In this document: piece after piece, positions 1,855-39,500 of the stretch | How the letters are laid out: each line of letters starts with the position of its first letter | How positions within the stretch are numbered: the stretch's first letter is position 1 | NCBI GenBank assembly: GCA_973895155.1 | Contig: OZ316897.1 | Location: 12,709,375 to 12,773,374, forward strand | Reading direction: 5' to 3' | DNA length: 64,000 nt | DNA from: Marsupella aquatica | Taxonomy: Eukaryota; Plantae; Marchantiophyta | Notes under the pieces: model-generated | Seen by the model: the letters and a program-made list of their open reading frames with translations, nothing else | Databases searched by the model: none | What the model was told of the DNA's origin: nothing | Position numbers and translations under genes: made by a program

Positions 1855-1927
1855 TCCGTTGTAGTCTAGATGGTTAGGATACTCGGCTCTCACCCGAGCG
1901 ACCCGGGTTCGAGTCCCGGCAACGGAA
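1855..1927 (+). tRNA. tRNA-Glu (anticodon CTC)
   Basis: Acceptor stem TCCGTTG/CAACGGA, anticodon arm CTCGG-CTCTCAC-CCGAG, T arm with GGTTCGAGTCC B box, no encoded CCA, T-run at ~1951. Confidence 0.97.
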
Positions 1928-5778: not shown

Positions 5779-8471
5779 TCACATGAAAGCAACACCAGGG
5801 TAGGAAGCTTCGAAACTGGGATCCTCAAATTTGAAAAAATTGAGACCACAGGCCGATACGAGGTTGATCGGGGGATCTACAAAACTCCCATTCAGAATTT
5901 TCTTGGCCACCCCTTTGTAGAAGGCTTCAGTAAAATGTATCCCGTCCCAGTTTAAATACTCCTTGGGGTTGGCGCAAGGGCGACCGAATACTGGACTGCC
6001 GTTCAGGAAACCACTGCTCCCGCATGACACTCTCGGGTCGAAATTATGCTGTCCTCCGACGCCGCAACATGCATTCAGCTTCACCGAGTCCAACATCCCT
6101 GGTTGATGATTCACAGCGCCCACGATGTTAAAATACTTCGCCCAAAGTCGGCAGAAATATCACAGCAGCATTGTTAGGAAGGAATCACTGTTGGCAAAGA
6201 AGTCGAATGACGAGATTTTCTTAGGTTTCATCGGTCTTGTTATTGGTAATGTCAGAAGGTACCAACTCTGCTCACGCTCACAAACCTAGCCCCGTCAAGC
6301 TTGACTCCTGGGTTCTTCATAAAAACTCAATGCTCATCCTGATTACGTTGAACATACAGTTCATGCGAATTCTTCTCCATTTTCCACCCTTGGCCTATTC
6401 TCCGAATTGTGAGGGTGCCAAAAACTCGACCTAGGCATTCATGTACACCGGCGAAGTACTCACCGTAAGCTCCACAGTTGGAGAGGATGTCCATGTTCGC
6501 GGCGTAATAATCCACATGGATGATTGTTGCATCGAAAAGCCGTATGCGCAAGGCGAGGATTGTGAGATACAACTGCTTATTCAGTTCTTGTACTGCATTG
6601 TTGTAGTCTAGTAAACATCCGAAGTCGTCTATCGCCACTCCTGGAGCCTCAAAGTCATTCAAAAACAGAGGGGAGCAGCCTTCGGCGGGCACATTAAATA
6701 TCATGAAACTCCTCGCCCCACTGTTATAAAGAGTCTGCGAGTTACAACAAACCCTTAGAGTACATCGACTACCAATTAGGATTGATCCACCAAAAGATGG
6801 ATGCAAGCGTGACGTGATGTACTCAATATAGGGTCTAACTTAATTGCCTATGTTGAGATGGCCTAAGAGAGTGGCTCTAAGTTGAGCTTGCATACCTAGT
6901 GCCCATCTTGATATGAATCTCGAAGATTATAATTCCCATCCACAATTGTCGAAATCGTTTTAAGGGTTCTCATCCTAGAATCCAGAACTATGGGCGGTAT
7001 TTTGATCATATAGACGAGCGTAAGGAAGCCTCTAGATTGATTGTAAGCTTTGTAATTGAGATACTATCCTCGATTAACTGTATGTTCAAGCTGAAGACTC
7101 CTGAGGGACTGGTCCCTGTCTTCAAATTGGGCTAATCACAACTCATAATTTTCCTTAAGGTATTCACATTCATGATGATTGACAACGACAGTACTCTCTT
7201 GATGTTATCATGTCGTTGTGGTCACCAAAGCACAAGGCGGAAACGGACATGATCCATGACTCTATTCCATCATAGTACGCGATTCGAAAGATCATACTCA
7301 CCAAAACAGACTGAAATATCGAAGCCACCGTCTCCGGAACAACATTTTGCATCACTTGCGAGATGGTGAGTGGCCTCAAATAAGCCGTGGTCAGGTCGTT
7401 TCCTCCGATGGAAACAATGTATAAACTGTCGCTGAATGTTTCTTCTTTCGGTAGATTTCCGGGACAATATGTACATCCTACATGACAATCAGGCAGAGGA
7501 GGCACCTCGTGATGTAGACATTCGAAGCCACAGTTAATTAAGGGACGTAGAAACATACTTGACCATACGAAGCCTGCTGAGTAAGACTAATCGACGTGAC
7601 CATAGAAATGGTGCTGCTCACAAGTTTCTTTACCCAAGCTAGCGTGACCGCCATTGCAGTGGCAAGACAAAGACTAATACAATTTTTCCGAACAAAAGCG
7701 AAATCTCCAATGGGCAAATGACACACCAGTTACAAATAAAGCAGAAATTCTCTGGTACTTCATCAAATTCTGGTCGTTATGAAAATTATGCTAACACAGC
7801 ATTTGTTGCCCTCGTTGCATGGAGTGATAAGCAAAACGTCAAACGCTGAGTCGCGCGGTGAGGCAAGTGATGTGGTCAAAGAACTACATCCTCAAGCTAG
7901 CCCATCGTGGAGTGAACTAGAGAAACCGCAGAAGGTAATCAAAGCAATTAGCCGGGAGCAATGCTAGTGATCAAATATACAACGTGGATGCTCACGCACC
8001 TGGTTGGAGTTGAGCGTTGAATGTTCTCTGCTTGAATCCAAGAAATTGATCCACCTGAGCGATCAGGGAGAAGGGCGAGAAAGATGTGTCATTCCCGGCC
8101 GTGGCTCCCGCATACGCAAAATTCGCTCCTCGTCTCAGATCCGGAGAGAAGCTTTGTAAGTAAGGTGGAAGTAGAGGGAAGGAGAACGCTTGCGCGATAA
8201 AATCAAGGAGCAGCCTACCGTCCGAGAACCGACCTGCGGGATGCGGGAAGTAACTCGCCCCGTAAGGAAATCCAATGGCTGCGTTAGAGGTGGAAGGAAA
8301 TGCGATAGCTGCGTTTCCTGTGTCGGACAGAGAGTCTCCAAAGTTGAAAATGGCCGACGGACATGAGAAGTACTGCAGCTCCCGTTGGCCATTTGTGCGC
8401 ACAGCAAAGCTCATCATGATCCAGGTGAGGAGGCCGAGCTCTACGAGAGATAGTAGTATTGTTGACGACAT
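5779..8471 (-). CDS. GDSL esterase/lipase, secreted; 4 exons (8471-8000, 7477-7302, 6734-6464, 6098-5779)
   Basis: Hydrophobic N-terminal signal, FNFGDSLSDTGN, GRFSDGRL, GANFA, SIGGND, ACCG and WDGIHFTEA motifs. GT-AG junctions join in consistent phase. Confidence 0.95.
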
Positions 8472-9815
8472 CTCTCCCGTCAAGGCGGAAGGAATCCCCT
8501 GGAGGCCCACGCAGATTGCAAACCGTTGTCTTCAAGGCCTAAACAACACGAGCGTTACGTGGAGTGTACACGGCACAAAGCTAGGGCTACGGACCACCGC
8601 TCTACTCCTGCAGCGCAACTTGCCATACGTTCAGCAGAGCTTCAGATGTTTGGACATACCTTAATATTGAGATTTGGGACCGACAGCCAATTTGAAGGCG
8701 TGAACTTCAAGAATCCGGTCTCGCGAACTGAGACAGACACAACGACCATTTGACACCGGTATAACTCAATTAATAAATCACGACATTGACGTCGACTCCC
8801 GGGGACCCTTGGCATGGTGGAGGGCCCTTCGAATCCGCGAAGGCCGTGGATTGTGATGCTCTTCACACTTCAGAACGGGAATTACGGGTATATCGTTCCT
8901 CAATTCGTATTTGCGAGGCGTGGCCATTAGTGGGAACGAACGGAACTCGTGCCGGATAGTAAATTGCAAGCTGCGTATCTAACTAGATCAAGCTCTGCAG
9001 CTGCTTCTTCGGGACGTGCATGCCTGCCATAAGGTACCGTATTCGGTACCACATACCGTAACTATAAAGGAAGCTATGAGTTGCGATCTGATCGAGGTGC
9101 CATGAGAATAACATACAGTAATGCTACAGTACAGTACTGGAGTCCATTCATCAGCTCTGAAGGCACTGACTATGGACGTACTGATACGTACTCTGTGACA
9201 TGATTATGTGGCGCAGAATGGACAGGACGAACTGGCTCCGATCGCGAGCTCATCAGATACTCGGATTCAATGCAGATTTGGTCGTCCACGTACAGTACCT
9301 CCACACTGTTTTGCATCTCACGTCGAACCGAGCCAGAACTGACGACCGAACGTTGCTAACTTGACATCGACAGACACATCTCTGGATGCAGTTCAGCTCG
9401 ACCACAGCACTGACGAGATTCTTCTGCGTAGCCTACCTGAAGAAAGCCTACACGATCGATCGGCGTCAGTCTGTGGGTTGGGTTGGCAATAAATTACTGA
9501 TCACGACGGGAGATCGATCGCTTGCTAATCACGATGCTAGTAGCTCGTCCATATCACGAAGCAGGTCAAAGGAATTCGGAGGACTCATCTCTCGCTGCAA
9601 GTGAGGAAATTGATCGATAGAAGAAGCGCTCGATGGAGGCAATTTATCGATGTACCAATGAATGCATCGAGCAGTTCTCGGAGCGTTAGATTGCACGAAG
9701 CGGGACAAAGAAGGAGATAATTATAGTGAGGCAGGGACAACAACCCAGGGCAACAAAGGGAAGGCTTTAATTAGCAAGTCGTCCCTGGGGGCAGGGGGGG
9801 GGGGGAGGCTCAGTA

Positions 9816-11505: not shown

Positions 11506-13507
11506 TATGGCCAAAGGTCATCATCCTTAATCACATGCGGTTGCCTCCCTTGAAAAAAAAAAACATCCTTAATCACAATCTTTGAGATGCTCTCTTTTTG
11601 CCTCAAGAGAACTAATTGAATTTCATCCAAAAAGCAAGCATACAATAGGGGGGGCTCACTAAAATGAGCGTCACCCAGGCTCGGCCAATTGAATGTCGTC
11701 ATGCCCAAAAAAAACCGGAGAGGCCGGAACCAGGAGAGAATCATGAGCAAAAAGTAGGCGGCTAAATCTATGGTTTAACTACTGCAATGGGAAAGACACC
11801 CGTCATATGACTGGCCAGTGAGAAAGAACCGGTAGGGTTCCACAGAGTGGGTCTGTGACTATATTCACATTCAGTCAGTCAGGTCTGCGGTGCCACTTCT
11901 ACACCTGAAAGGGGGGGGGGACACATGGATTACCTGCCCAGATACTAGATTTACGGGCTTTGAGATGCTCTCACTGTAAGTGCATACCCCATAAGTGCAA
12001 AACCTTGGCTAACTGCAAGGCTTCCTGTTCTTCTCTTTTTGTCCTGTGGAGTTTGAACTTTTTGTAAGTGCAAATTAATTGCCAAGAAAATTTTCATCAT
12101 GTAATTATTTCTAGGTTTCATCAGCAAAGATAGGTGCATCACACCATTATTTCCAGGTTTCACAAGCACCATAAAATATTTTGTTAGACTAAGTCAGGTT
12201 CAACCTTCAGTTCAAATTCAAGGAATTCAGATTTCAGTTGCCCAGGGGTTATTCCAAGCTTATATTGGCCATTGTTAATTGGTTGTTTCATCTTTCATCC
12301 ACAACCAAGTACTAGAAAAATCATACGACATACCACAAAGGATGCAACTTAGTGTTGAGTTGTCTAGCAAATAATGTAAACTTGCATGGTCAAGTCAACC
12401 TGGTTTCAACCTTTTGTGGGCCACCCCTGTTGTATGCTGGCTTTTTGGATGGAACTCGCTGAATTTTTCAAGGCAAAAAAAAAGACCAAGACAACACAAG
12501 TGAATCTGATTGTGTTAAGCCAAGAGAACCGAGTGATGTCGGACAAGATCAACTGTGTTACGCCAATAGACCTCCTTCAGGGAATGTGCACCAACCAATG
12601 TAAAGCTTCATTACCAATGGGTACAAGGAAACAGATGCTATAACAAATGTGGTATCGTGTGGTTTATAGCATTATGCACTCCAAGCAGCTTGTTCAAGAA
12701 CTATCACCAAGGCCTGAAGTGACCAAAGTTACTGAATAGTTGGCGGCTACAAATAACTGGTGATATTTTTGTTTACATGAGGCGATTCTTTTGAATATAT
12801 CCCTGGATTAATCAGTATAGGAGGATGATTTTGGAAGGATCAAATTTCTGAATGAATTAGTTTCCTTTCTGAAAATCAATTATGTAAAAACAAATAGTTA
12901 CATTCTGGGTGTTTATCATGCCCAGTCTTTGTTATTCTTGTTGTGAATTTTTTTATGGTTAGTGGGGGTAATTACTTTTGCTGGTGTTGCCACAAACACA
13001 AGTGGACGTATTTTTGCCCCTCCTCTCGTGCTAAACTTTATTTTCTTCTCGTTTCTGGAAAACGTCCATCTTAATTTTGATTTTTCGGGCCCAACGCCAC
13101 TTTACTGCGCTGGGCGCCAAAACTATTTCATTAATTATGATGTGCGCGAAATTAGTTACTCTGGGCGCAGAGTAAGGCAGGCGGACCCAGAGCTCTAAGA
13201 GGGAAAAGTGGCCGTCAACCTGTAGGCAGAGCTCTGTGACACTGCCGGGAAGAAACCACTTTTCTTGTGGGTGGGATTGCTCACGACCTTGTGCGTTTCT
13301 CTGATTCTTTGTTCAAATTTGTTTTCGTGCTGATCGCTCGATTCCGTCAACTGATTTTGATGCTCGTTGTGACTGACCTTTTGCTCCATTCGATATTGCT
13401 TGGAGCCGAATCGATCAATTTTGCTAATCATTTTATCTCATTGTTACCTTCCGTGAGTAACATCCGTTGTTGCTGCAGTGAATAGACTATTGTATTGTAC
13501 ATTGATA

Positions 13508-14035
13508 TCTGCTGAAGATCTTAGACTTTCAAAAAGAATTCTGTCTTCTTCTGTTGTAGCGTAGAACTTGTATTATGTTGTTTGACATTGACCTATGCTT
13601 TTTGGGAACCAGCTCAAACCAGGTGGAAGTATACCAGAGAAAGGCAGGAAATTGTCTCTTCACATAAAGAACCGAAAGGAGCTCAGCCGTGATGTTATCA
13701 AGGTGAGACCTGTGACATTACAGTTGCTGAATTGTAGAATTTCAGTTTAAAAGTTGGTATGGAGATTTGGCATAAACTATGACAGGACCAGCACTTATTA
13801 TTTCTACTACGAGCCGCTGAAGTTTTTTGTTATCTCTGCACCTGTCTTTGAATTGCGTGTCTATGTGCCATATGACAGTTTAGGGTTTATGAATTGAATT
13901 TTGTGTCTATGTGCCATATGACAGTCAGATACAGCAACGGTCGAAATTCCTGAAGTCGAACTAGAACTTGCTGCAGGCACTCTTGGGGGACTTGTTACGA
14001 CTGTTGAAGGCTTGGTCTCTCAAGTTAGTGAAAGT
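13508..14035 (+). other. Duplicated ZPR1 segment (copy of ~22567-23119: intron end, exon 12, intron, exon 13) inserted in the leader intron of F-box/Kelch copy 1
   Basis: Colinear with ZPR1. Exon copy 13613-13702 has 5 substitutions versus 22685-22774; exon copy 13925-14035 is identical to 23009-23119. AG/GT sites retained. Confidence 0.95.
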
Positions 14036-14044
14036 TTAGGTGCA

Positions 14045-15277
14045 ATGGAGAAACGCTTTTGTACTACATTGAGCTCAGGAACGTTGCCGGCAATCTCACC
14101 TCCACACACACTGCAAGACGGCGAGAGATGTCTGCTACTGGAGGAGCTGCTTCCAGGGATTCAAAATCATATTACCTTGGATAAAATTGCCTCTAAGCTG
14201 TCTTGGAAAGATTTTCATGTCCTCTCATCAGTAAGTCGGTGCTGGCATCATGCAATTCAAAATCGTCACGTGTACGATGTGAGAGTCCGTTTGCAGTCAA
14301 GAGAGACCCTTGCTCTGATTTATGGGAATCGTGGTGGTTACTCCTCTGAACTCACTCTCTATTCCACTAGAGACCGTTCTTGTTATCGACTTCTTCCAAA
14401 CCTGTCAAACAGGAATGAGGGAATCCGGCTATTCAACCAGTGTGTTACAGTGGATGGGAAAATTTATGTCCTGGGAGGACGCAAACCTGATCGTATCAAC
14501 GTATACATGTTGGACCTTGCGGGGCAGAGGCAGTGGACACAGTGTGCGAGTATGAGGCATCCAATATCTTCCTTGAAATGCACTGTCATCAATGGGAAGA
14601 TTTTTGCATTTGGGAATAGAGGCAGGGGCCGCCAGTCTCGGGAAGGAGAGGTGTATGATCCCAAGGAAAATACTTGGTCTCCAATCAAGACCATGCCGAT
14701 TGAGACCATGAGCAAATTCTTCCGTCATCTGGTTCACACAGTTGAAGTGCTGGGACATGAGCTGTTTCATTGTGGGTACACTCTAGCTTGCCCAACAGAC
14801 CGGTCCTCGGACTCAGAGCAGAACGAGCGCCCAGAATGTGCACTTTATAATCCAGTCAAGGATGAGTGGAGAGATTTTAAACATTTCGATAGGGAGAATG
14901 AATTCCCATTTGTGGCACATGGACGCTTGCATTCAATGGGTAGAAGAGCTATATATGTCCACGATGTTGACAGTCATTCATGGAGTCAGCTGCATACCTT
15001 TCCGTTGGATGGAGTGGACGATAATCGTATGGACGATATTGATATGGACGGAAACATCTTGTTTCCAATTTCTGCTAGAGCTGTGGAAGACGAGCTGTTA
15101 GTCTTAATGAACTGGTATGAGGGTCTGTTTGGTGCTACCTCCGGGTTCTGTCTTCTTCAGAGCAAGGGCTTTGGTGGTGACAAAGAAGAAATTCAGTGGG
15201 AGAAAGTACCAGTTGATTTTACCGAAAATCATTATGATTCCAGTACTCTTTGTCCAGTATCTCTCCTTGAACTTTGA
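14045..15277 (+). CDS. F-box/Kelch-repeat protein, copy 1 (intronless core ORF; possibly N-terminally extended by ZPR1-derived exons)
   Basis: F-box-like LLPGIQNHITLDKIASKLSWKDFHVLSSVSRCW. Kelch repeats GKIYVLGG...W...ASM and GKIFAFG...EVYDPKENTW. Confidence 0.9.
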   Translation: MEKRFCTTLSSGTLPAISPPHTLQDGERCLLLEELLPGIQNHITLDKIASKLSWKDFHVLSSVSRCWHHAIQNRHVYDVRVRLQSRETLALIYGNRGGYSSELTLYSTRDRSCYRLLPNLSNRNEGIRLFNQCVTVDGKIYVLGGRKPDRINVYMLDLAGQRQWTQCASMRHPISSLKCTVINGKIFAFGNRGRGRQSREGEVYDPKENTWSPIKTMPIETMSKFFRHLVHTVEVLGHELFHCGYTLACPTDRSSDSEQNERPECALYNPVKDEWRDFKHFDRENEFPFVAHGRLHSMGRRAIYVHDVDSHSWSQLHTFPLDGVDDNRMDDIDMDGNILFPISARAVEDELLVLMNWYEGLFGATSGFCLLQSKGFGGDKEEIQWEKVPVDFTENHYDSSTLCPVSLLEL

Positions 15278-18630: not shown

Positions 18631-21600
18631 ATGAGTCTCGAGGACGGGGGCGTGTTGGATGTCGGAGCGGCGACGGACTCAGTGAGCTCCGGCGCCGACG
18701 ATGCGCCGTTGCACACTCTGGAGAGCCTGTGCATGCGCTGTGGAAACAATGTGAGTATTTCTCTTCTGATTGTTCGCACGGGAGATGATGTTATGTGATG
18801 TGATGAGATAAAAATCTTGCTAGGTGCATTGTTTGTGGAGCAAGGGTTTTAGAGGCTTTTGCTCGGTCTCCTGCAATTCTTCCGTTTTCGACTCCGCTTG
18901 TTCTTTGTGAATTTTTCATGGCTGGGGCCGACAGACGTTCTTCCTGTATTGCCTTGCCTTTACGATGTTCAAGCATCTTCGGGATTTTCCCCCTAGTATT
19001 TACGATTTTGCGCTGGCGCAATTCACAGGGCACTACACGCTTTTTGATTACCAAGGTTCCTCACTTTCGAGAGGTACGGTGCTTTATGCTGAAACAATTC
19101 GCAACCAGGGGCTCAATTTAGTTGTGAATTTGATCACTATCAATTTTTTCCATGGCTCAGAGCTTACTGGAAGTAGGAAAAAATTACGGATTAGTGGAAT
19201 TGTTCGTTGTCCGAAAAGGGAAACGGTTACATTTGCGAGGTGACGTCTCTCATTTCACTTTGTTATCCGTTTACGTGCAGGTCGTTCTTATGGCCTTCGA
19301 GTGCCCTCATTGTAATGAAAGGTGAAAGACCTACCGCTTGAGTGATTGCCACTTATGAGATTTTGTGTTATAGGAATGTCCCTCTGGCTTTAGCATTTCT
19401 TCACTAATTATATTTACTTTTGGATAACACTCCTGTGAGGTTTCCTGTTCAGAGAGCGCAGATTTCAGGGAAACGACACACCAGCTCAATTCTGTTTTTG
19501 CTTCTCCAGCGATCTCTTCCACTTTCAATTTATTTTTCGGCGTGATCTGACTCGCAGGAATAACGAGGTTCAATTCGCTGGACAAGTTCAGCCTCAGGGA
19601 TGTACTTACACGTTGAGTGTTCCAGCTGGTGATCCACAGGTATGCATTCTTTACTTGTAGTTAAAATGGTTGATGTGTGACCATATGATCTAAAGTTTAT
19701 TGAGTTATGATGCTGAAAACTAACGAACGTCAGCTCATGATTTTTCGAATCCAAAGAGTTTCAAAGTAGTAGGAATCTTGGGCGAGGGTTGCAACTTTGA
19801 TGCATTGTTATGTGTCGGTTCAATTCTGTGAGCAATTATTTTTCATCAGTGAAATCGTATTCTACTGTCTGAGCTTTTCTGCTGTACCATAAGGATCACT
19901 TGGCACTATAACCTCACTTTGTAAGTATAAAACAGGTGCTGAATCGGCAAGTGGTGAAGTCAGACTCTGGCACCATCAAGGTATGCTTAGAATAGTCGTT
20001 TTGAATTTCTCAGGTGATAGGATATTTGTGTAACTGGGTATTTTGCTTCTCTTATGGCTTTTTACCTGGTCTTATAATATGATTCAAAAGATATCCTAGG
20101 GCTTCATACGGACTGCGATGTACTGACCCATTCAGCATATAATCATCGCAAAAAGTAGCCGTTCTTACCATTTGCAATGTTGCAGATTTTAGAACTTGAC
20201 TTCGAAGTGCCTCCTGAAGCTCAACGCGGTACTCTTTCAACGGTTGGCCTTCTCGAAACAGTTGATTGAATTTCTTACATTGTATAGTTCTGATCTCAGT
20301 TTTTATTGATCTGGGTCTGTTTTACAGTCCTTTTGTTCTACGCTCTCTGTACATATTCTAACCGCAGTAGCTGTAAATATTCGCGTCTCTGCCAGCCTGA
20401 TTCCAAATTTCTAAGGACTACATGCATTATATCTGGTATTACTAGCGAGTAGTCGCTTGGTTTCGTTCCTGTCTGTCTTTATTTCCTGCATAGTGGATAG
20501 AAAACAGTACGTCCCAGGATAGAGAAGTAGATTCGCCAGAGCATAGGACGTTAACTAGGTTTTTGTTTCTGGCCAGATTGAAGGCGTTCTGTCAAGAGCT
20601 GCAGAAGAGTTGGAAGCTTTGCAATCAGAGCGCCGGGTATGCACAAGCTTCAATACGGCAGTTTTATCTTTTGCATAAATTCTTTTGACGATTGTTTAGT
20701 GGAAAAATGCACGAAATATATATCCGTGAAATAATTAACACGGTTTTGAGAAAGTACAATTGGCTGAGATTTATCAGCCAATGAAAACTTGCCCTCAGTA
20801 CAGTATGCTTAGAGTGCGACGTATTGCAAGAGAGCACGTATGTAGATAAGGTGTGAATCGGTCGCATATACGGTAGCATCGAGTTAAGGGACAACATGAG
20901 GTCGAATGCGTGGACGCTCAAGGGAAATGGGTTGGAAAGTGAAGTGCTTGTACTTCAAATCACGTGACCTAAATATCACAGACACTTCTTTTACATTGCA
21001 TTAGAAGGATCTGTTGTTTGTCACCTTTCCGCATCACGTGTTGTCAAGATTGAGTTACTAACTTAAAAAAGCATTGAATCTATCAGAAAGTAGACTTAAA
21101 AATGGCTGAGGCGATAGACGCGTTTCTCCTGAAGTTGAAGGCATGTGCTTCTGGTGAGCAAGCCTTCACATTTGTTATTGATGATCCATCAGGCAACAGC
21201 TTCATTGAGAACCCGTAGGTTGCGCCCCGTCATCTGTCCGAAATTTCCCTTTTCTCTAAAATTGCATGATGTTTTGCTGGTCGTACGGTTTGTGTTTTGT
21301 GTTTCGTTCTCAATTATGCTGCTTTTCCAGCGATCTGGACAATATTCTCTGGTGCCCTTAGTGGTCAGTGGCGTTTAGCTCGCCTATGACTAATAAGATA
21401 TTGAACTCTAAGTCGTTTTTTCCCTTCCTTAAAAGATCAAAGTGAAATAATTAACTGCTTGTGCATGTTTCTTGTAGGAATGCGCCAGCATCGGACCCAC
21501 TACTGGCAACCCATTACTATGACCGAACTGCTGATCAGCATGCTGCGTTAGGCTTCCTTGCTGAGACCCATGACCCGCCATCTGCAAATCAAACTGGGCA

Positions 21601-23770
21601 TAGTGTAGCCAGTGCTAGTGAGCAAAGGCATGGATATACACCTGCTGGGACGACAAGAGAGCCTCATGGTTCTGTAGGCGCCGAAGGAGCACATCGAGCA
21701 ATTGCCCATGGCAACACTGACACTGTTGCTGCAGCCCTTTTCAAATATTCTGCTCCTGAAGAGGTGGACTTTGTACCACTCCTTTGTCTTAGTTATGATA
21801 CGAGTCTTCCATTCAATCTGATCCGCATAATTCAATATTGCAGTTAAGACATTCTGTTCTGTGAGCTCGAAGGAAGATGCGATCTTGACGTGCTTGCTCT
21901 GCAGGTTATGACTTTTCCGTCAACTTGTGGGAGCTGTTCAGCTGCTTGTGAAACACGAATGTTTGTCACTAGTATCCTCTAATGCGACACGATCTCAAAA
22001 TTTTGATTTAATGGCAGTGATGGCTAATTCACATTGTACCATTAAAGTTTAGGGTGGGAACTGCTAAGTCGTATACATTCAATGTCTTTGTCTTTCACGC
22101 TGGCATTGAAATTTTTGCTTTTCACAATTTAAATTTTTTGATAGTGGATCCAGTATTTGGCAGAGTTTCAATCCTTTACTGCAGTTTCAATCAGATATTC
22201 CATATTTCAAGGAAGTAATTGTCATGGCCTCGACCTGTGACAATTGTGGTTACCGCAACTCTGAGGTAAGCACTTGGTCTCTCGCAGTTTTGTTTAAGTC
22301 CCACGAATTTCTCTTCTGCCCTGTCATACGTTGCTGCTATCAAATTCTCGTTTCAACTATCAACACTAAATGAAAATAGCAGAATGTAGAATGTGGAATT
22401 AGGGTAGGGTGAGGGGAACTCCCGAAAATCAGAAAGCGTTCTCTTGCAGGACCTTCAAAGTGTAAGCCCTTCGCGTCACTCAACAAAGTTTTCTTTATTT
22501 ACTGTCGCTCTAATTTCTACTTGGTGGCATCCTGGGAGAGTTCTACTCGTTTACTAGTTTCATTTCTCTGCTCAAGATATTAGACTTTCAAAAAGAGCTC
22601 TGTCTTCTTCCGCAATTGTCATAACTTGTAGCGTAGAACTTGTATTATATTGTTTGACATTGACCTTTGCTTTTGGGGAACCAGCTCAAACCAGGTGGAA
22701 GTATACCAGAAAAAGGCAGGAAATTGTCTCTTCGCATAAAGAACCAAAAGGACCTAAGCCGTGATGTTATCAAGGTGAGACCTGTGACTTTACAGACGTT
22801 CAATTGTAAAATTTATTATCCAATAAGTTTTTAAAAGTTGATATAAAGATTTGGCACAAACGACGACAGTACCGGCAATTATTATCTCTACTAGGAGCGG
22901 CTGAAGTTTTTCGTTATCTCCGCACTTGTCTTTGAATTGCGTGTCTGTGTGCCCTATGACAATTTACGGTTTATGAATTGAATTCTGTGTCTATGTGCCA
23001 TATGACAGTCAGATACAGCAACGGTCGAAATTCCTGAAGTCGAACTAGAACTTGCTGCAGGCACTCTTGGGGGACTTGTTACGACTGTTGAAGGCTTGGT
23101 CTCTCAAGTTAGTGAAAGTAAACTTCTCACTGTACCTCTTTTCAGTGCGACCAAATAATTCTTCCCAGTACTTATCGGTAGTCATAGCCATGCTATTACG
23201 TATTACGTTTTTGGTGCAGCCTTCATGTCGACCCTTAGTTTTTATAACCAGTGAAGACTTGTGCAGATCTAAAACGTGTTCACGGATTCAGTATTGGAGA
23301 CAGTGCTGATCCATGGCAGAAGAGTAAATGGCAAGACTTCGACAGGAATTTGAAGAAGGTGAGGCACATTGATACAACGATGACACGGAACTCTATCGAC
23401 TAGAAGCCATTTTATAAAACTACTAGTAGCAGTAGCTGGTTCCGGCAGTACTGAGAGTTACCAACATGCCATGCTGGTGCAGTTGCTGGATGTAGAGGAG
23501 GAATGGACATTAATCCTTGATGATGCTCTCGCCAACTCCTTCATTGCACCTGCGACTGATGACTACGAAGCTGACAGCCAGTTGACGGGTAAGTTTCTCA
23601 ATCTCAACGAGTAGCTTTATTAGTGTCTTGAAGCGAAGGCATGTGGCTAATCTGCTTTTCTATTTGCAGCTGTCGATTATGCTAGAACGTGGGAACAGGA
23701 TGAAGACCTTGGGCTCCATGACATGGATACATCATCTGCAGATGCGGCTTACGAGCCTGCAAGGGCTTAA
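18631..23770 (+). CDS. ZPR1: Zinc finger protein ZPR1, 16 exons (18631-18750, 19029-19073, 19281-19321, 19558-19639, 19936-19980, 20186-20242, 20577-20636, 21087-21214, 21478-21763, 21905-21971, 22195-22265, 22685-22774, 23009-23117, 23267-23358, 23483-23588, 23670-23770)
   Basis: Spliced protein has two ZPR1 modules: ESLCMRC..TRFLITKVPHFREVVLMAFECPHC..NNE..LNRQVVKS..DDPSGNSFIENP and [77 protein letters not shown]. All junctions are in phase. Confidence 0.96.
21972..22194 (+). other. U12-type (minor spliceosome) GT-AG intron in ZPR1
   Basis: 5' splice site GTATCCTCT; branch-like TCCTTTAC at 22172-22179, ~16 nt from the AG; splicing restores MFVTNIPYFKE. Confidence 0.8.
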
Positions 23771-24759
23771 GCTACGACAAGTTATCAATGAGTTCCACCT
23801 CGAGTAGTTCCTCTGGTATTCGGTAGTAGGTGGAGCGGTAAGGGTCATCAAGTAGGTGCTCGGTCTCATGATCTTCGAACTGGGAGAATGGTGCCCGACT
23901 AGTAGTACCAGTTATGCGCGTAAAATTTTTCCCATCTCCTGATATATTCCTTGGTGACATTGATCTGAAACATCGCTTATTACCACCTTCTTGGATGGCC
24001 GAAGTCTTCTCCACTGATCTGTTCTGCCCCATCGATGCACTTTCCACTTCGGGCTAGCGTGGTCTAAGTCTCGCTACTGAAGATTTTTCTGTACCAGGTG
24101 ACGTCTATTGTCCCTTTGTACGGGTCCTCCTGTTTCAGGTGATGTTGACTGACCATCCTGTATATTGTCAATTATTAAATGCTAAAGTGGAACCATTGTA
24201 ACGAAACGAACATGGTACAGCTACATCTATGCAGCAGCAGCATTGTCACTGTCGGTTGGACCTGGTGCGGGACATTTGAATGAATTGTGGAGAAAGTGTA
24301 CACCCCTTTTATCCCCAAACCAATCGTCCAAAATTGGAGACAATACGACGATCCTTTTAAGACCTACATTTTGTATCTGCTCTCTCTTCTGCGCTAGCAA
24401 ACTCACCGCCATCGATTCGATCGACGAAAGTTACATTATTATCGAGACATTCCCATAGCGAAGCATCCCCTACAATTATGAATCAATTGAATTGAGATTG
24501 GGATCGAATGGATCAACTCACTTCGAATTATGAGTTTGTAATAACTCTGTTAAGATTGATGGTGATGATCGTAGTGAGCTCATCCTGGAGGGATCGGACT
24601 ACTCGATTTGAATTTGGGTGACTATATTGATCAGAATCTTGTACTAAATATGGGAACTGATTCCCAACTCAATATGTTTGCGTTGGATCACCCTAGATTT
24701 AAGGAAAGCCATCAGATTGTGATTAATAGGCCCTATCTGTTGGTCGGGGAAATAAGGGA

Positions 24760-27854: not shown

Positions 27855-28022
27855 CGCAGAGCTGAAAATGGTATCAATGCCGAATCCTTACCACCTGACG
27901 AAGAAATTGCCAGAAGCATATGGAAGCATATCGTCCTCGCAGAGCTGAAAATGGTATCAATGCCGAATCCTTACCACCTGACGAAGAAATTGCCAGAAGC
28001 ATATGGAAGCATATCGTCCTCG
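27855..28022. repeat. Perfect 83-bp tandem duplication
   Basis: CGCAGAGCTGAAAATGG...GCATATCGTCCT repeated with period 83 and a CG overlap at the junction. Confidence 0.9.
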
Positions 28023-28837: not shown

Positions 28838-30016
28838 TCAAAGTTCAAGGAGAGATATTGAACAACGATTGGAACTATCTCGAGTCCGAGTAACATTAAT
28901 TGGTACTTTCTCCCACTGAATTTCTATTTTGTCACCACCAAAGCCCTTGGTGTGAATAAGAAAGGGCCCGGGGGAAGCGTAATCCCGCACTACTTCACAC
29001 CAGTCCATTAAGACCAATAGCTCGTCTTCCACAGCTTTAGCATAAATTGGAAACATGACGTTTTCGTCCATGTCAATATACTCCATTCCACCGGGCGGAA
29101 AGGTATGCAGCTGCCTCCGTGAATGACTTTCAACATCGTGGACATATATACCTGCTTTGCTCATGGAATGCAAGCGTCCTTGTGCCACAAACGGGAGTTC
29201 ATTCTCCCGTTCAAAATGCTTAAAATCTCCCCACTCATCTTTGACTGAATGGTAAACCGCAAATTCTGGCCGGCCTGAGTCGGTGTGGTCTTCCTGGCAA
29301 GTGTAGCCACAATGAAACAGCTCCTGTCCCAGCGCTTCAACTGTGTGAACCTGATGATTGAAAATTTTGCTCATGGTCTCAATCGGCATGGTCTTGATCG
29401 GAGACCAAGTATCTTCCTTGGGGTCATACACCTCTGCTCCCCAAGACTGGTTGCGGCCTGAGCCTCCTCTCCCAAATGCAAAAATCTTTCCATTGATGAC
29501 ACCGCATTTCAAGCTAGATCTTGGTTCCATCATACTCGCACACAATCTCCACTGCCTCTGCCCCGCAACGTCCAACACATGTAATTGGCGACAGTGAGAT
29601 TCGCGTCCTCCCAGGGCATAAACTTTCCCATCCACTGAAACACATTGGCTGAATGGCAAGTTTAGAGGAAGTCGGTAACAAGAACGGTCTCTAGCGGAAT
29701 AGAGAGAGATTTTAAAGGAGACACCATCACATTCCTCAAAAATCAGAGCGAGGGTCTCGGTTGTTTGCAAACGGACTCTCACGTCGTACACCTGACGATT
29801 ACGAATAGCACGATTCCAGCCGCGACTTACTGATGAGAGGACATGAAAATCTTTCCAGGACAGCTGAGAAGCAATGTTTTCCAAGGTAATATGATTCTGA
29901 ATCCCCGGAAGAAGCTCCTCCAGTGACAGAGATCTCTCGCAGTCTTGCAGCGTGTCTGAAGATGAGATTGCCGGCAACGTTCCTGAGCTCAATGGCGTAC
30001 AAAATCGTTTCTCCAT
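28838..30016 (-). CDS. F-box/Kelch-repeat protein, copy 2 (inverted paralog of 14045-15277; alternative in-frame ATG at 30037)
   Basis: Same architecture: MEKRFCT..LLPGIQNHITL..LSWKDFHVLSSVSR, Kelch repeats, C-terminal SLLEL. The upstream region is also homologous to ~13000-13505. Confidence 0.9.
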   Translation of the reverse strand: MEKRFCTPLSSGTLPAISSSDTLQDCERSLSLEELLPGIQNHITLENIASQLSWKDFHVLSSVSRGWNRAIRNRQVYDVRVRLQTTETLALIFEECDGVSFKISLYSARDRSCYRLPLNLPFSQCVSVDGKVYALGGRESHCRQLHVLDVAGQRQWRLCASMMEPRSSLKCGVINGKIFAFGRGGSGRNQSWGAEVYDPKEDTWSPIKTMPIETMSKIFNHQVHTVEALGQELFHCGYTCQEDHTDSGRPEFAVYHSVKDEWGDFKHFERENELPFVAQGRLHSMSKAGIYVHDVESHSRRQLHTFPPGGMEYIDMDENVMFPIYAKAVEDELLVLMDWCEVVRDYASPGPFLIHTKGFGGDKIEIQWEKVPINVTRTRDSSNRCSISLLEL

Positions 30017-31809
30017 TGCACCTGAATCACTGTTCATTACAACAGCTGAAATTACAAGTCAAAGTACAACTGCAACAAGACATTGAATGCAGCAACAACG
30101 GCTGTCAGTCATGGAAGGGAGGCAAAACTGATAGAGACACTCCAACGATATCGAATGCAGCAGCAAATGTCACTCACGGCGTACATCGAAATCAGTTGAC
30201 GAAGTTGAAATCAGCACAAACTCCAATTTAAACACAGACTCGCTGAAACGCAGAAAATCGTTAGAAATGGACCAGAAGAAAATCGTCAGAAATGGAACCA
30301 GAACTGTACGCACCGGACAAGGGTAGTGAGAAGCTCCACCCACAAGGAAAATGGTTCTTCCCGGCACAGTGAGTCACGGAGGTCTCTGCCTACGGGATTG
30401 ACGGCCTATGGAGTCAAACTGTATGCACGCTCTGGGTCTAATCTCGTACTCTTCGCTCCCGCGTTTTCCAAATGAATTTCGCACAAACCACAATGAATGA
30501 AAACTTTTCGGCGCCCAGCGCAGTAGAGCTGCGTTGGGCCCGAGGAAGTAGGTAGGACCCGTTTCGGGAACGGGGTAGAAATTATATTTTCAGACACGAG
30601 ACTACGAGAGGGGGAACCCTCAAAGCATTTCTCTGGAAAGAAGAGAAAACGTGTTTTTGTGCTGATAACACTAGTGCAGTTTTGAAAATACTGAAATAAG
30701 CCGCTTGCACATACTTTGGCTACCAACAAGTTTGGAAACATTTAAGTGGCCACTCGGGATAGTCTAAAAGCAATCCAAAATAGGTTTTGGCTAACTTTGA
30801 TGGTGAATTACACTACTATTGTATATAGCATGCTGGAACATGCTTTGCTTTTTGTCAGGTAGTGATGTGTAAGTGGATAACATTAGATAATAAACCTAGA
30901 ATACATATTAAATGTGAATGGGATAAAATAATATAAATACAGCACATGCAAATAAAAGCACATAGTGATCAATGAAAATACAACTAAATTTTATGACACA
31001 AAGATGCTACGAGTTGTGCACTTATTTCAATGTGCCTTATGACACCCATTTCAATAAAAACCATAAACTTAGAAAGAAAAAAAACCATGAGGGGAACTTA
31101 AGACATGATGTGTTGATGTTACTTAAAACCATTCCCCTCGCTCATGAGAATACTTAAAAGTGTTAGAAAATGAAGCTCATGGATTCTCTCTAGGACATAA
31201 CAAGTTTAAAAATTAAGAGGGCTATCAAAATAAATTCAAAGTACCATAGGATACCAAAACTTAAAGGGGTTCAAAAATTAATTAGAAGTATATATGATAA
31301 AAAGGATGCCCCTTGTTAAGTTACATTCAAATAAAAATTAACACAAAATTATGAATAAGACAAAACATGAAAGTTGGATTCACCATATAGGAAACATTGT
31401 GGTACTTCTATACTAGTGCACACGACACCATTCACTCATTCAGATTCAGAGCTAAGCTTTTTTCACTCTTTCCTATGTGAAGGTGCTTTAACCCCATCAC
31501 TTCTAGTCACCCTTATTTGTGAAGATTTGCAGCCATATAGACGTCAAGCATCATTTTGGCGATCAGTTTGCGATCAGTTTTTCTTTTCGTTTTCTGTGCA
31601 GCCTTGCCGTGTTGGAAAATGTCTACTCTGTTGAGCTCGATGAGTCACTTATTCAATTAACAGCCTTGCCATAAAATTTGTGGGGGGCAGCACCAGAGCA
31701 TAAAAAAAAACCCAAGTCCCTGAAGAACAAAGAGGCAGCTAAGACAGACTGGAGATTTTCAGACTAAGCGGGAAGTTTACATGCACGATACATTGTCGGC
31801 TGGAACTTT

Positions 31810-33543: not shown

Positions 33544-36500
33544 TCAATCAAGGCGACGACGTTTCTTATTACGAGGGGGTTCTGGGGAGGTCAACTCATC
33601 TTCAACCTTCTCCCGCTTGCGCAGATTGTATCTTGATGTGATGATAACTGGTGACCGTCTGCCACAGAAATACCACCACAGTTTTCATTCCCACCTGCTA
33701 CGGAAGTAGTTGAGATTGAAGAAAACTCTCAGGGGCCAGCACGAAAGGACTCGGAAATCAGATGATCTTGTGTACAAGGGATGCAACATGGTTACATAAG
33801 CCCGATAATTGCTCGTCGAGGATCGACCTGCTAGTTTCGTCTTTGTTGTTGTTGGATAAAGGACGTAACGGTTGGCGACTCTGAGCAGCTGTCTGTGTGG
33901 CAGACGATGAAGACTTCTTCAACTTTTCACCGGCTTGTAATGCTGCAAAAGCAAATAGGTATTTCGAGATGATTAAGTTGCACTTAATGATCAATGACGA
34001 TAAGTGGCCAACCTTGCCAACGAGGAAAAGAGTGTCCTTAAAAACTTTCAAACTAGAAATCTCACCGTTGCGTGTACGGCTTTGTGGTCGTGCGACCTGT
34101 TGCGAATTGACGGGGCCAGCTGATAAAGATTCACTCAAAGCTCTGAAACTGGGGAGCTTGTTCTGATTTGAGTAGCTCGTCTTAGACTTGCCACCCGGGC
34201 GATCCTTGCTTAACGTAGCGATTCTCTTCCTCTGCTGTGACACAAACTTGGGTGCGAAGTCTTCCTTCGCCGCAGGAGCTATCCTGGCCATGCCCTGGGC
34301 AGCAGGCAGCAAGGACCTTGCATCAGGCTTAGCCGAAGTACTCATTGAGTTACTCCAGGTGAAGGGATTTATCTTCTTTGCCTGCAAAAATACGAACTCC
34401 AAGGTCAGTACATTTTGTACAATGAAGTCCTGCCAACTCTCAACCCAAGAAGAATGTGGGTGAAAGGAAAAGAATATGGTCTACCTGTTCCGTGAGGAGT
34501 GCCTGAAGGTGCAAGATCTCCTCCTTTTGGTCCTCAGATGTTTTCCGCTCTTGCTCGAGAGCCTCTTCTAGCTGTTTCACTTGAGCATCGAACCCCTCCA
34601 ACTTGATTGTCTCATGTCTTAGATGAATAAGTTCTGATTCGAGGCTGTTGAAATTTTCAACCCACGATCGAACCTTCCCTCGATGATCAAACACTTGCTC
34701 CTCAAGAGAGCCAAGCATAGTCGCAACCTTCGAATTCTCAGCGCACACTCTTCCTGACAGTTGCAAGGCTTCCGCCTGCACCAATTTCTTCTGGCTCTCC
34801 AGGTCAACCATGCGTGCTTCCGTATCTATCACATGCTTTTGAAATTCGTATTCAACCTCCCCTAAATTATACTGAACCTCGTCCCTCAGTTCTTGCAAAT
34901 CTGCAGCAATCTTCGTGTTCTGTTCACTCATCTCAGAAACTTGCGCTTCCGTATCATGTATCTGGGATTTGAGAGCTGAAAGTTCAACCTCGTGATCTGA
35001 AACAGTTTTTGTAAGTAGGACCTCAAGACCATATATCCTGGAGTTATAAGAGTCAATCGTCTGATTGAGCTCTAATTCATGCTTCTTTAAAACCGAGATT
35101 TTATCTTCGCTTGCAACAAATTTCCTTGTCAGCTCCTCTATTTCTTTGCTAATTTCCTCATTCTGTACTTCTTGCACATGCAACTCGTCAATTAGTTTAG
35201 TTTTCTCAGCTGTCAAAACTTCAAACCTCTGTTGCAGGTCATTCTTCAAGAGTTCAGACTCTTCGGCAGCTGCAAGCTGTCCCTCCAAATTATCCATATG
35301 ATCTCTTAAATCAGATTTCTCTGCAACAAGTGACTTAACGTGTGCCTCAAGCTCTAACCCTGTCTCTTCTAATTTGGCCACCCTACCTTGTTCCTTTGAC
35401 AACATCACTCGCACCTGAGCCAACTTGTCGGATATCACATCAATTTCATGCCTTTGGACTTCCACTTTGTTGCCCTTCTCAAGAGCATCAGTCACAGCCT
35501 CCTCCAAACGGCGCCTCGCCAAGTGGACCTCACCATCAAGATCTGTGAACCTTGAAACAGCGTTCACTAACTCGGACTCACTGGAAAAAAGCTTATTCTC
35601 TACCATTGACTTGGCAACTTGTACCTCCATTAGTTCTTCAAACAATTTCTGTCTCTCAGAATTCATTTCTTCAATACCTTTGAGAAAGTCAGCGCTCTCA
35701 GAGGTCTTGTTCTCCAGAGCTGCGGTAGTACTCTCGAGAAGAGTGCGCAAGCTTTCAAGCTCCTTCTCGAGTTCAGTATCATGTCCTCTGCAAATACCTA
35801 ACTCGGACTCCAGAGCGCAAATACTGCTTTGTTTTAGATCCAATTCTTCTCTAAGCTTACTGCACTCATCGGTTAGTACAGCCACCTGGGCTTCCAGATC
35901 TTTGGCTCTTAAAAAGGTAACCAATGACTGCTCCTCTGCCTGTACTTGGGATTTCAAAACAAGATCCAGCTTGATTTTATACCCAGCAACACAACTCTTC
36001 AGATCAATGAGATCTGCCAGGGCAGCCACAAGTCTCGCATCTGTTTCCTGTTGATCCCACCACGCTCTTTGTTACTCAACTTGCAATCTTGGCATGCTAA
36101 GCAGCAGTGTACAAAGTTTTGAATGGAGGATGTAACGCGCTCTGGCAAACGAAAGGTGAATGAGTACTGTGTTAGAAAGCAGGGGCATATCATACACAAA
36201 AGAACGGCACAAAAACACTGCTTTGAACGATTCTATGCTAATGAAAACCTACGCCAACCAGAGTTGATACTGTTCATCTAAGCACTATGACACGACAGCC
36301 GCAATCTGCCTTAAAGAGTCTCAAGATACCAAGAGTGGTCTAGCGAACACGCACACCAAAACCGTAAAGAGCTTTTCTGGCTTTTCTTTCAAATAGAACG
36401 ACTGTCGTCGTGTTTACCTGTTCATGTGGTCTCGGGTCTTCTTCTTTCTCATCAGAATACTTCTTGATCCCATCACCATTCATTGAGACTACGTGATTAC

Positions 36501-39500
36501 TGTGGTTAGTTCCAGGATCTCCAGAGACTTGAGTTTCCCCGTTAATCCCATGATTGGGCGTATCAACAACTTTAACTTGCTCTTCCGTGCTCCTGTCACT
36601 GTCGTCGAGCTGGGGACCCAAACATGCCTGCAGGGCAGCCTTTTCCTGTTTGATTGCTTCGATAGAGTCGACCATAGTTTTGAGTGCCGCCCCTTTGACA
36701 GCAATATCCTTGCGTAACAAAACTTTCTCATCCTCCAAGGACTTAGCAGCGATCACCAGTTGGTTGTGATCATTCTCCAGTGCTTGATGGACTTTTCTTG
36801 CTGCTTCCATCTGTTGCGTTTGGTCCGAGAGCTGGGCCTCGAGCTTGAGCAGGTCGTCTAGCTTAAGTTCGAGATTGGACTTCACGTCCTCCAAATGTGC
36901 AAAATTGACCTGCAGCGCCTCCTCCTTTGCATGTAGTAAGTCCCTCAGTTCAGTCTCCTTACACTTAGCACTTTGATGTTCCTGCTGGAGATCAGCCATG
37001 CTTGTCTGGAATGTATTCTTCTCCTGCTCTAGTCTTTGAATGATCCCCTGCATTGCTGTAGAGGCCACCTCCAGGTCAGCTATTTTGACTGAGAGGAGAC
37101 CCTTATCATCTTCCAGAGACTTCACTTTTGTTAAAAGCTGGCTATAATCTTCACGAGCAATTTTGCTAGTAGTCTCAGAAAGAATGACCTTGTTAAGCTG
37201 TTCAGCAGCACGTTGTTCCAAAATTTCTACCTCATTAGTCTTTTTCAACAGATCCGACTTCAAGTCATCTACCACGGCAAGATCAGCTTGTAACTTGTCA
37301 ATTGCCTCTTTGAGCTTTTGAACTTGACTTTCAGCAGTCGCACTTCTCAAAAGCTCGTCGGAGAGGCAAGCATCCAAAGTTGAGTTTTGGTGGGTTACAG
37401 CTTCGAGCTCATGAGCCTTCCTTGCTAGTTCGGCCTGTGTGGTTTGCTTCTCGACAAGAAGAGCTTCATGCTCTCCTTTCAGTGTCTCGAATCTTACATT
37501 CATCTCAAGCACGTTCTTTTCTGCATCTGATAGTGCAAACTGGAGTGACTCCTTTTCAGCACTAAGAGTCTGAAGGTTCATTTTTGCCTCCTCAAGGATG
37601 GAATTTGTCTCCAGCAATCCCCTGTCAGCCTCGTCGTTGTCACACTTTCCAGCGTCCAGTGAAACAGACATCTCCTCCAACTCAGCTAGCTTGGACTCCA
37701 GGGTTTCCTTGTCTTGCTGAAGCGAGGCAAGTTGGGCGAGAGAAGATTCCAATTTGGAAGACGTGTCCTGGAGATTGAGCTGAAGTTCTGACACATCAGC
37801 ATTCATACGTTCCACTTGTTGCCGTAGTTCGTTTGCCTGATCTTCTGCCGCTTTTCTCAAGTTCTCCTTCTCATTAAGGAGATTGATCTGTTGACTAGCA
37901 AGCCTCTCCATTTCCTCCAGCTGGATGAGCTTGCTCTGCAGTATAGAACTGATCTGCTGCACCTCATTATCCATTTCACTTCGTAACTTCTCCATGTTTT
38001 CAGCACTAAGTCGTCTCTCGACCTCCAAAGCTCGCTCTTTCTCGTCATTCTGCTCCAACATAGTTTTCAGAAGCTCTTCCTTGTGGAGTACAGCTGCGTC
38101 TCTTGATTGCTCTACGTCGCTCTTGATAAAGGACATGGCTGAAAGCTTTTCATCAAGTGACTTAGCATTTTGATCAGCCTCTTCCAATTTGCTCAGCAGG
38201 TCACCATGGGCGCCATCTTTCTCCTTCAGGGAACTAGAAAGTTGTTCGCAAGCTGTCATCTGCAATCGCAGAAACATACTTCAATCGTCATAACTTTCGA
38301 TAGACATTAAGCTAGCTTGATGAGTCACCTAGTCCAGACTTGACCCGTACTGGATGGAAGAACTTAATTGGCCTGCCACTTGACACGCAAATCTCGTATA
38401 GTCGAGTGAAATAGCAAGGTCCTTGACATTTTGCTGAGCTCTCGAGCAAACAAGCGAATTGTCATCGTGAAAATGCTCATCCTTTATATCACAAGAGAAA
38501 AGACAAAACTAGCATCTCCCTGCTGAAGAACCTTAGAGCTTGGAAGGCACACTTTCGCACTCGCTTCAATTGTCCAACAAACATACAGATGAGAGATAAA
38601 TTCAATTAAATGCTTACGGAGAGTTTGTATTTGAAATCTTACCATCTCCTCAAGAGACTGAGTAGCCTTCGCTCTCTCCTCCTCTGCTTGGCTCAACTGA
38701 GTATCAATTTGAGCTTTCACAGCGTTGGCTTCATCCAATTTGGATTGCAAGCTACCAGCAGTACATCTTGACTGCAAGAGAAGAAAAATTCAATTTATAC
38801 ATTCAAAAGGGACCGAATATAATTAGCGTATGACCATAAGATCAAATAGTATTACTCAAAGCATATCGTGGATGGTGAGAAAGGTACGTTTTCAAGCTCA
38901 TCAGTGGTCTTTTGTAACTCCAAGAAGATGTCCTCCTGCAAACACAGACGTACGTACGGGTGTGAGACCACTGCAAATCAACCGACAAGACAAGGCGGCA
39001 AGTAAGACAGTAACCTTTACATGGGAAGAGTACGACTTAGACGGCGAAGAAGTACTTCAGTCTATCCATAGACAGTAGATCAATATGCCTCTGAAAGTAG
39101 AGAAAGTTGAGCCCCTGCCCGAAAGGTACGCTAAGTATTGTCCAACAAAGCCAACTTGCCTGCAGCTTTGTCTGCTGATCAAATGCGAGCTTCATCTTCT
39201 CAGCTTGAGATCTTAGAGCAGTCAACTCCTGCGCATATTCAGTCGCCTGTGCTTCTGCAAGGTTCTCTTGTCTCATCGCCTGAGATTTCAAGTGAAACGT
39301 ACAGAGTTGTGAAAGTCTTATCAAATAGAAGAGCAACTCAGTCGATTGCGTTACCTAAGGCAATTCCTCTGACAGCAACTTAGTACAACGCCAAATCTAG
39401 ATAGGGTTAGATGAAGAGAAAATAATCCCGCGTCCCTCCATGTTATCGACTTTGCTTAAGAAAGCAAAACGGCACAGGTCCTTCTACTCAGTCGCCAGGA

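Follow-up and report, generated by a model that had tools for sequence, protein, structure and literature searches.

Introduction

Plant F-box/Kelch (FBK) proteins are substrate receptors of SCF ligases (Pfam families Kelch_1, Kelch_FKB95 and F-box). ZPR1, a tandem of zinc ribbon and jelly-roll modules, is a chaperone of eEF1A. Here, we analyse a locus of the liverwort Marsupella aquatica at which DNA from genes of these two kinds has been joined. It lies on contig OZ316897.1 (assembly GCA_973895155.1, positions 12,709,375 to 12,773,374 of the forward strand; this stretch of 64,000 nucleotides (nt) is hereafter called the window), where a piece of a ZPR1 gene has been copied into the 5' end of an F-box/Kelch gene and one of its exons now reads in frame into the Kelch coding sequence.

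The recipient gene shares with plant FBK receptors an N-terminal helical F-box-like region followed by a Kelch β-propeller, an intronless coding sequence and a lineage-specific expansion, here in leafy liverworts. It differs from them in an F-box match that stays below the Pfam threshold, in best relatives that are just 46% identical and in a ZPR1 match that, among the 28 family members compared, is unique to the locus. On the donor side, the two copied exons (A and B) align to residues 263–326 of mouse ZPR1, but what the locus holds is a fragment and not a ZPR1 domain. Zpr1 has been reported to hold eEF1A through its zinc finger together with a helical hairpin (PMC11790920).

Filler or templated insertions at chromosome breaks are a known process in plants (PMC8871565). 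The locus resembles such events in combining a ∼32 nt deletion with an insert from a nearby template on the same chromosome, with neither transposon ends nor a target-site duplication; it differs in that its insert, 528 nt copied over a distance of 9 kb, is long for events of the polymerase-theta type. Chimeric genes have been described on rice chromosome 3 (PMC3673630) and, as repeat-mediated products, in Drosophila (PMC2211543). The likeness lies in a piece copied at the DNA level with its intron and splice sites, in a left junction that runs from intron to intron and in an open reading frame (ORF) that is continuous over the join. The present locus departs from those cases in its right junction, which is exon-to-exon and falls inside the first codons of the recipient, and in a predicted start at a recycled ATG of an upstream ORF (uORF); moreover, the published cases have transcript support, whereas the present one is a candidate predicted from its DNA.

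The copied segment and its source

The features concerned are the following.

13508–14035, plus strand: copied ZPR1 segment, aligned to parent positions 22567–23119
22567–23119, plus strand: parent segment, comprising the 3' part of an intron, exon A (22685–22774), an intron, exon B (23009–23117) and a GT (23118–23119)
18637–23800, plus strand: parent ZPR1 gene, with both zinc ribbons and both jelly-roll halves as open exon pieces; extent approximate
13902–14035, plus strand: tract of 134 nt identical to the parent, probably a gene-conversion tract

Base-by-base alignment bears out the proposal of an earlier note on this DNA that positions 13508–14035 (528 nt) are a same-strand copy of ZPR1 22567–23119, which lies about 9 kb downstream. 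The duplication and its two junctions can be read directly in the DNA. The copy opens with the final 105 nt of a ZPR1 intron, continues through exon A, the intron behind it and exon B, and closes with the GT of the intron that follows (14034–14035). Exons A and B are 92–100% identical to those of the neighbouring ZPR1 gene and correspond to residues 263–291 and 292–326 of the mouse protein (2qkd), that is, to its second module; exon B matches Pfam jr-ZPR1 with an E value of 1.5e-11. In the parent gene, Pfam places Zn_ribbon_ZPR1 at 21914–21979 and 22176–22253 and jr-ZPR1 at 23009–23116 and 23474–23590. The exons that match the zinc ribbon sit just upstream of the copied exons and outside the copied segment.

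Divergence from the parent is uneven. Positions 13508–13901 differ from it by 39 mismatches (9.9%) and have lost 13 and 12 nt in two deletions, and positions 13902–14035 do not differ from it at all; under a uniform rate a mismatch-free tract of 134 nt has a probability of about 9e-7. This tract probably records gene conversion. Selection on exon B was considered as the cause of its identity and is disfavoured, because the tract extends 23 nt into the intron and stops where the homology ends, which fits conversion better.

A retrocopy is ruled out by the presence of the intron between the two copied exons. Capture by a transposon is not supported, there being neither terminal inverted repeats nor a target duplication at the junctions, and no Rfam family was found at the junctions. 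Junction microhomology amounts to at most 1 nt. Judged from the junctions, templated (filler) repair of a break and a replication template switch would fit equally well.

The recipient gene, its paralog and the sequence replaced

14045–15277, plus strand: F-box/Kelch ORF of the recipient (copy 1), with 410 codons and a start in strong context (G at both −3 and +4)
28838–30543, minus strand: paralog (copy 2), with upstream ATG (uATG) at 30186, donor GT at 30177, acceptor AG at 30047–30046, start ATG at 30037 and second Met codon at 30016
13360–13452, plus strand: old uORF start and end of the leader exon in copy 1, with ATG at 13360 and candidate donors GT 13369 (GTGACT) and GT 13453 (GTGAGT)
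13085–13153, plus strand: conserved upstream block, 83% identical over 69 nt to paralog positions 30475–30543 (minus strand)

The identity of the recipient as a Kelch protein is clear. Pfam Kelch_1 matches with an E value of 5.5e-17 (61 bits against a cut-off of 20), an AlphaFold (AF2) model shows the propeller with a predicted local distance difference test (pLDDT) score of about 90, and a Foldseek search with this model returns the Kelch domains of KLHL2, KLHL3 and Keap1 (E value 1e-16). The Pfam F-box match is weaker (E values of 0.021 and 0.0017 in copies 1 and 2, respectively, neither of which reaches the 20.5-bit cut-off). A match recurs at the same place (profile positions 9–41 of 43) in ten of 28 family members, and the model has four short helices at this position, again with a pLDDT of about 90. 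In the protein collection searched, the closest proteins form a large set from the leafy liverwort Calypogeia fissa with at most 46% identity; the product of 14045–15277 was itself not found there, the best match being a C. fissa protein at 46%. A ZPR1 match occurs in only one of the 28 family members, which is the locus itself.

Copy 2 is found in inverted orientation on the far side of ZPR1. Its coding region (28838–30037, minus strand) specifies a protein with 66% identity to that of copy 1, and the homology extends over the entire gene unit and takes in some 450 nt of upstream sequence; both parents and the untouched paralog are contained within 17 kb. The copy 2 ORF begins seven codons before the MEKRF Met. 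Together with 26 relatives it starts with M-x-x-D-(P/S), and because its N-terminus aligns with the starts of the Calypogeia proteins, ATG 30037 is taken as the start codon of the family. Copy 1 has no such start; in its place stands ZPR1 exon B, in frame. Upstream of its coding region, copy 2 shows the uATG at 30186, two codons and GTGAGT (30186–30172), then a leader intron ending in tttcag, 8 nt of 5' untranslated region (UTR) and the ATG at 30037.

Copy 1 is homologous to copy 2 as far as about 13507 and again from 14036 onwards (TTA GGT GCA ATG in copy 1, TCA GGT GCA ATG in copy 2). The ∼32 nt that have been replaced comprise the last part of the leader intron, acceptor included, the 8 nt of 5' UTR, the ancestral start codon and codons 1–4. 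The earlier note had the position right in placing the insert where the paralog has the end of its leader intron, but the lost sequence also held the acceptor, the UTR, the start codon and the first codons. Since the native acceptor and start codon are gone, the case for a chimera is structurally stronger than that note supposed. The left junction is intron-to-intron, and the right junction is exon (plus GT)-to-exon, with ZPR1 exon B fused in frame to Kelch codon 5. The conserved N-terminal region of the family is retained in copy 1 from residue 8.

Some further observations concern the leaders of the two copies. In copy 2, splicing would leave a uORF of five codons whose stop codon, TAA, shares one base with the main ATG (TAATG; 30186–30035, minus strand), an arrangement suited to termination and reinitiation. 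A tandem unit of some 85 nt with a donor-like hexamer at its start is present in both leaders (13365–13480; 30180–30085, minus strand); the units of copy 1 begin with GTGACT and then GTGAGT, those of copy 2 with GTGAGT and then ATGACT. Each paralog has thereby kept a single perfect GTGAGT, in alternate units (13453 in copy 1, 30177 in copy 2), which fits a real leader intron. Further upstream, the block 13085–13153/30475–30543 is the best-conserved non-coding stretch between the paralogs and contains GGGCCCAAC and GCGCTGGGCGCC; its position suggests a possible promoter element for this Kelch family.

Splice sites and reading frames

13613–13702, plus strand: captured exon A, 90 nt, 30 codons, phase 0-0, five differences from the parent
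13925–14044, plus strand: captured exon B and join, consisting of exon B (13925–14033), the former donor GT and four retained F-box codons
13453–13612, plus strand: predicted hybrid intron, derived from the F-box leader intron up to about 13507 and from the ZPR1 intron at 13508–13612, with a pyrimidine tract and AG
13848–13939, plus strand: tandem duplicate at the exon B acceptor, 46 nt units, with AGs at 13877–13878 and 13923–13924

Splice sites were judged by inspection against those of the parent. Exon A is flanked by AG at 13611–13612 and GT at 13703–13704, both equal to the parent at the core positions, and exon B begins at 13925 after the AG at 13923–13924, so that the acceptors (13612 and 13924) and the internal donor (13703) have indeed been retained, as had been proposed. 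Exon A differs from the parent at 13639, 13662, 13674, 13681 and 13684 (three non-synonymous and two synonymous changes). The donor of exon B has gone from GAAA/GTAAAC in the parent to GAAA/GTTTAG in the copy; the altered context was recognized in the earlier note, with the GT (14034–14035) lying one base to the right of the place implied there. The predicted introns measure 160 nt (13453–13612) and 222 nt (13703–13924) and have a lower GC content than the flanking exons.

A stop codon at 13919–13921 stands immediately upstream of exon B. From 13925 to 14044 there follow 120 nt, or 40 codons, that are free of stops and in frame with ATG 14045, again in agreement with what had been claimed; positions 13925–15274 form a single open frame spanning the ZPR1/Kelch join, so that DNA of two parents is read through without interruption, as in a chimera. 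ATG 13360 proves to be in phase 0 with both GT 13369 (GTGACT) and GT 13453 (GTGAGT). When the exons are joined computationally, all four upstream splice combinations give open ORFs: 483 or 511 codons with exon A (donor 13369 or 13453, respectively) and 453 or 481 codons without it. The stop-free path from ATG 13360 into the F-box/Kelch ORF therefore exists as described, with lengths of 453–511 codons.

Two peculiarities of the insert deserve mention. At 13595, a T-to-A change relative to the parent has created an ATG 18 nt upstream of exon A and in frame with it, which would matter only if the hybrid intron were retained or if transcription started inside the insert. In addition, the two 46 nt units in the copy have identical final stretches of 22 nt, each with an AG. 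The parental counterpart (22932–23023) has AA at the first of these places and differs at two nearby sites; either selection has cleaned up the parent or the copy has been homogenized.

A proposed history of the locus

We propose that one of two inverted F-box/Kelch paralogs underwent a chromosome break or a template switch at its 5' end and that the repair copied 528 bp from ZPR1, replacing ∼32 nt that included the acceptor and the native start. Because the insert removed the native acceptor, the ZPR1 acceptors are the natural 3' ends for the leader intron; they are now the sole ones with an intron-like context, and that at 13612 is the nearest. The leader donor, most likely GTGAGT 13453, would pair with this acceptor and the donor of exon A with the exon B acceptor at 13924, giving an mRNA made of the leader, exon A and exon B/Kelch, in which the captured exons stand in frame before the Kelch ORF.

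Two products could be translated from such an mRNA. One would be a near-normal 410-residue protein initiated at Met 14045 through leaky scanning or reinitiation; the other would be an N-terminally extended chimera of about 483–511 residues starting at the old uORF ATG 13360. Around ATG 13360 the sequence is tttgATGc (T at −3, C at +4), and around ATG 14045 it is gcaATGg. An out-of-frame ATG at 13692, within exon A, opens a uORF of 16 codons, and ribosomes that skip ATG 13360 could meet it and then reinitiate at 14045. Because the ZPR1 fragment is predicted not to fold (see below), the extension is more likely to be a tolerated by-product than a transplanted ZPR1 function.

To this reading as a whole, namely that the copy was made by repair, that the gene survives, that the captured exons are in the mRNA in frame with the Kelch ORF and that two products are possible, we assign a probability of roughly 0.45, somewhat short of an even chance. 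Transcription start, each splice and the choice of start codon are predictions within it; the reading frames, the missing native start and the unbroken ORF can be seen directly in the sequence. The claim that a new gene arose here by local exon capture is partly supported: the capture holds at the DNA level, with two exons of the second ZPR1 module and an in-frame join, but the captured exons show no sign of selection. On this evidence, the locus is a plausible candidate for a young chimeric gene of a well-known kind.

Several considerations call for caution. Against a meaningful fusion protein, ATG 13360 belongs to the poorest context class and the context of Met 14045 is strong; moreover, ATG 13360 predates the insertion, since the paralog has it as the start of the five-codon uORF. 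The AG at 13877–13878 breaks the frame, and with its use the upstream ORF would run for 57 or 85 codons before a stop. Against the proposed history as a whole, the start of transcription could lie inside or downstream of the insert, and AG 14039 could still act as an acceptor and remove the insert entirely. From the phases, we estimate that in-frame joins at both ends would arise by chance about once in nine cases, or about once in 30 if donor 13453 is used, which also requires 28 open codons; these figures are notable, yet they are weak evidence when the locus emerged from a genome-wide hunt for oddities. The differences in exon A (Ka 0.044 and Ks 0.107, the non-synonymous and synonymous substitutions per site, from just five changes) are by our estimate close to the neutral expectation for a copy whose parent is under constraint. 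The captured exons thus appear to carry no mark of selection, any signal in exon B having been erased by conversion. Gene conversion is clearly active at the locus, and the insert could consequently seem younger than it really is. Finally, the Ka/Ks value of the paralogs given below indicates weak constraint on the Kelch family, and the argument from survival of the ORF rests on small counts.

Alternative explanations

The alternative that survives best, although we think it unlikely, leaves the ZPR1 piece outside the coding mRNA, either within one intron from 13453 to AG 14039 or upstream of a downstream transcription start, with the 410-residue protein as the sole product. The AG in question is preceded by TTT and lies 5 nt upstream of the ATG, Met 14045 is also present in the paralog and its context is strong, and the N-terminal region of the family is kept from residue 8, all of which would suit such an arrangement. 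The TTTAG at 14035–14039, which the earlier note offered as a fallback acceptor, is however former coding sequence (GAT TCA G/GT in the paralog) and not the ancestral acceptor. What precedes it is exon-like, with a T fraction of 0.35 in the 40 nt upstream against 0.46 upstream of the captured acceptors, and the native branch and pyrimidine region now lie 530 nt upstream. If splicing ran to 14040, the resulting uORF (13 or 41 codons) would overlap the main ATG; nor would one by default expect the skipping of two exons with splice sites identical to those of a working gene.

A somewhat less likely alternative is that loss of the acceptor and start crippled copy 1, which would then be a young pseudogene whose ORF is still open for want of time or through conversion from copy 2. 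Comparison of non-exonic copy and parent gives a divergence K of about 0.12 and the Kelch paralogs have a Ks of 0.237, which makes the insertion about half as old as the paralogs, an apparent age that conversion could have lowered. In simulations with some 0.06 substitutions per site along the lineage of copy 1, a neutral ORF of 1233 nt remains open in 8% of cases; the indel rate seen in the copy contributes a further factor of 0.08–0.29, for a combined survival of about 0.01–0.02. This low figure argues against a pseudogene, as do the gaps between copy 1 and copy 2, all of which are whole codons, and the lineage-specific changes, which number 21 in copy 1 and 22 in copy 2 with Calypogeia outgroups and show no rate excess. 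The loss of native start and acceptor speaks for decay, and so does the paralog Ka/Ks of 0.79 (14045–15277 against 28841–30016), which exceeds 1 in one 100-codon window; the uneven identity of the paralog coding sequences (81–91%) leaves room for conversion. F-box families have a fast turnover, a general background that also favours this explanation, and high Ka/Ks is usual in many expanded F-box families. In the present family, expanded in leafy liverworts, the high ratio points to fast or diversifying evolution. With the caution that the numbers are small, copy 1 is probably a weakly constrained yet living gene.

Less probable again is a selected new gene whose main product is a ZPR1–F-box/Kelch fusion, its ZPR1 part endowing the SCF adaptor with a new binding property, for instance towards eEF1A or the partners of ZPR1. 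The stop-free path from ATG 13360 with either donor and with or without exon A, the double in-frame join (by chance about 1 in 9, or 1 in 30 with donor 13453), the deletion of the native start, the second in-frame ATG at 13595 and the agreement of exon B with the parent all speak for it. Against these stand the age and poor context of ATG 13360, which together with its phase-0 donor is older than the insertion, the three non-synonymous and two synonymous changes in exon A, estimated to lie near the neutral rate of the flanking intron, the better fit of conversion to an identity that reaches 23 nt into the intron and the retention in the copy of the frame-breaking duplicate acceptor.

The protein itself is also a poor candidate for a transplanted function. 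The 67 captured residues comprise a linker and 38 of the 125 jr-ZPR1 positions (10–47), about 30% of the jelly-roll, the rest of which is encoded in the parent from 23267 onwards. Two CxxC pairs, as in the zinc ribbon of the ZPR1 family, are absent, and only the first residues of the helical hairpin are present; the parts reported to hold eEF1A (PMC11790920) are thus almost entirely lacking. Fold prediction, which took the contiguous frame only (13925–15274; exon B, 40 residues, and Kelch), gives residues 1–68 a pLDDT of about 34, compared with about 90 for the F-box helices and propeller, and the exon B extension is accordingly modelled as disordered and non-folding. The earlier description of a ZPR1 module placed on an E3 adaptor was therefore overstated. 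An expressed and functional ZPR1–E3 fusion is possible, but the logic of the protein argues against a transplanted ZPR1 function. In a more specific version, which we regard as a long shot, the fusion from the uORF ATG has been selected and the ZPR1 β-strand fragment acts on the SCF adaptor as a decoy or complementation tag. If this were true, docking on ZPR1 or its clients would tie an E3 ligase to the eEF1A folding pathway, with repeated conversion holding the fragment to the sequence of its essential parent.

An assembly or polishing artefact that misplaced ZPR1 sequence, suggested by the identity of the final 134 nt with the parent, is rejected on the 39 differences and two indels in the other 394 nt, and on clean junctions whose flanks are homologous to the paralog.

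Other features of the window

1855–1927: tRNA gene
7995–8510, minus strand: GDSL-lipase exon
34443–38277, minus strand: two long open frames, one (529 codons) with only a weak coiled-coil-type match and the other (645 codons) with no Pfam match
63160–63996, minus strand: PIP5K exon

The window also contains repeats of several kinds. A perfect tandem duplication of 83 nt (100% identical) lies at 27855–28020 in an open stretch of 136 codons. The most GC-rich part of the window holds a 32 nt tandem array of about six units (45836–46028), followed by repeats of about 195 and 64 nt (46525–46915). Inverted repeats of about 330 nt, 92–95% identical and about 6 kb apart (47756–48091 and 54064–54384), enclose an ORF with a zf-RVT match (51375–52304), and together these probably represent a transposon-related structure.

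Implications

Should the locus be transcribed otherwise than predicted, it would amount to an ordinary small local duplication in a 5' leader. If it is transcribed as predicted, it would show the birth of a bryophyte gene with unusual clarity. The replacement of the start codon and the recycling of the uORF make the case more interesting: a single repair event would have deleted the start of a gene, lent it the acceptors that rescued its leader intron and turned a five-codon uORF into the beginning of a longer protein. With both parents and the untouched paralog still lying within 17 kb of each other, each of these steps can be read directly.

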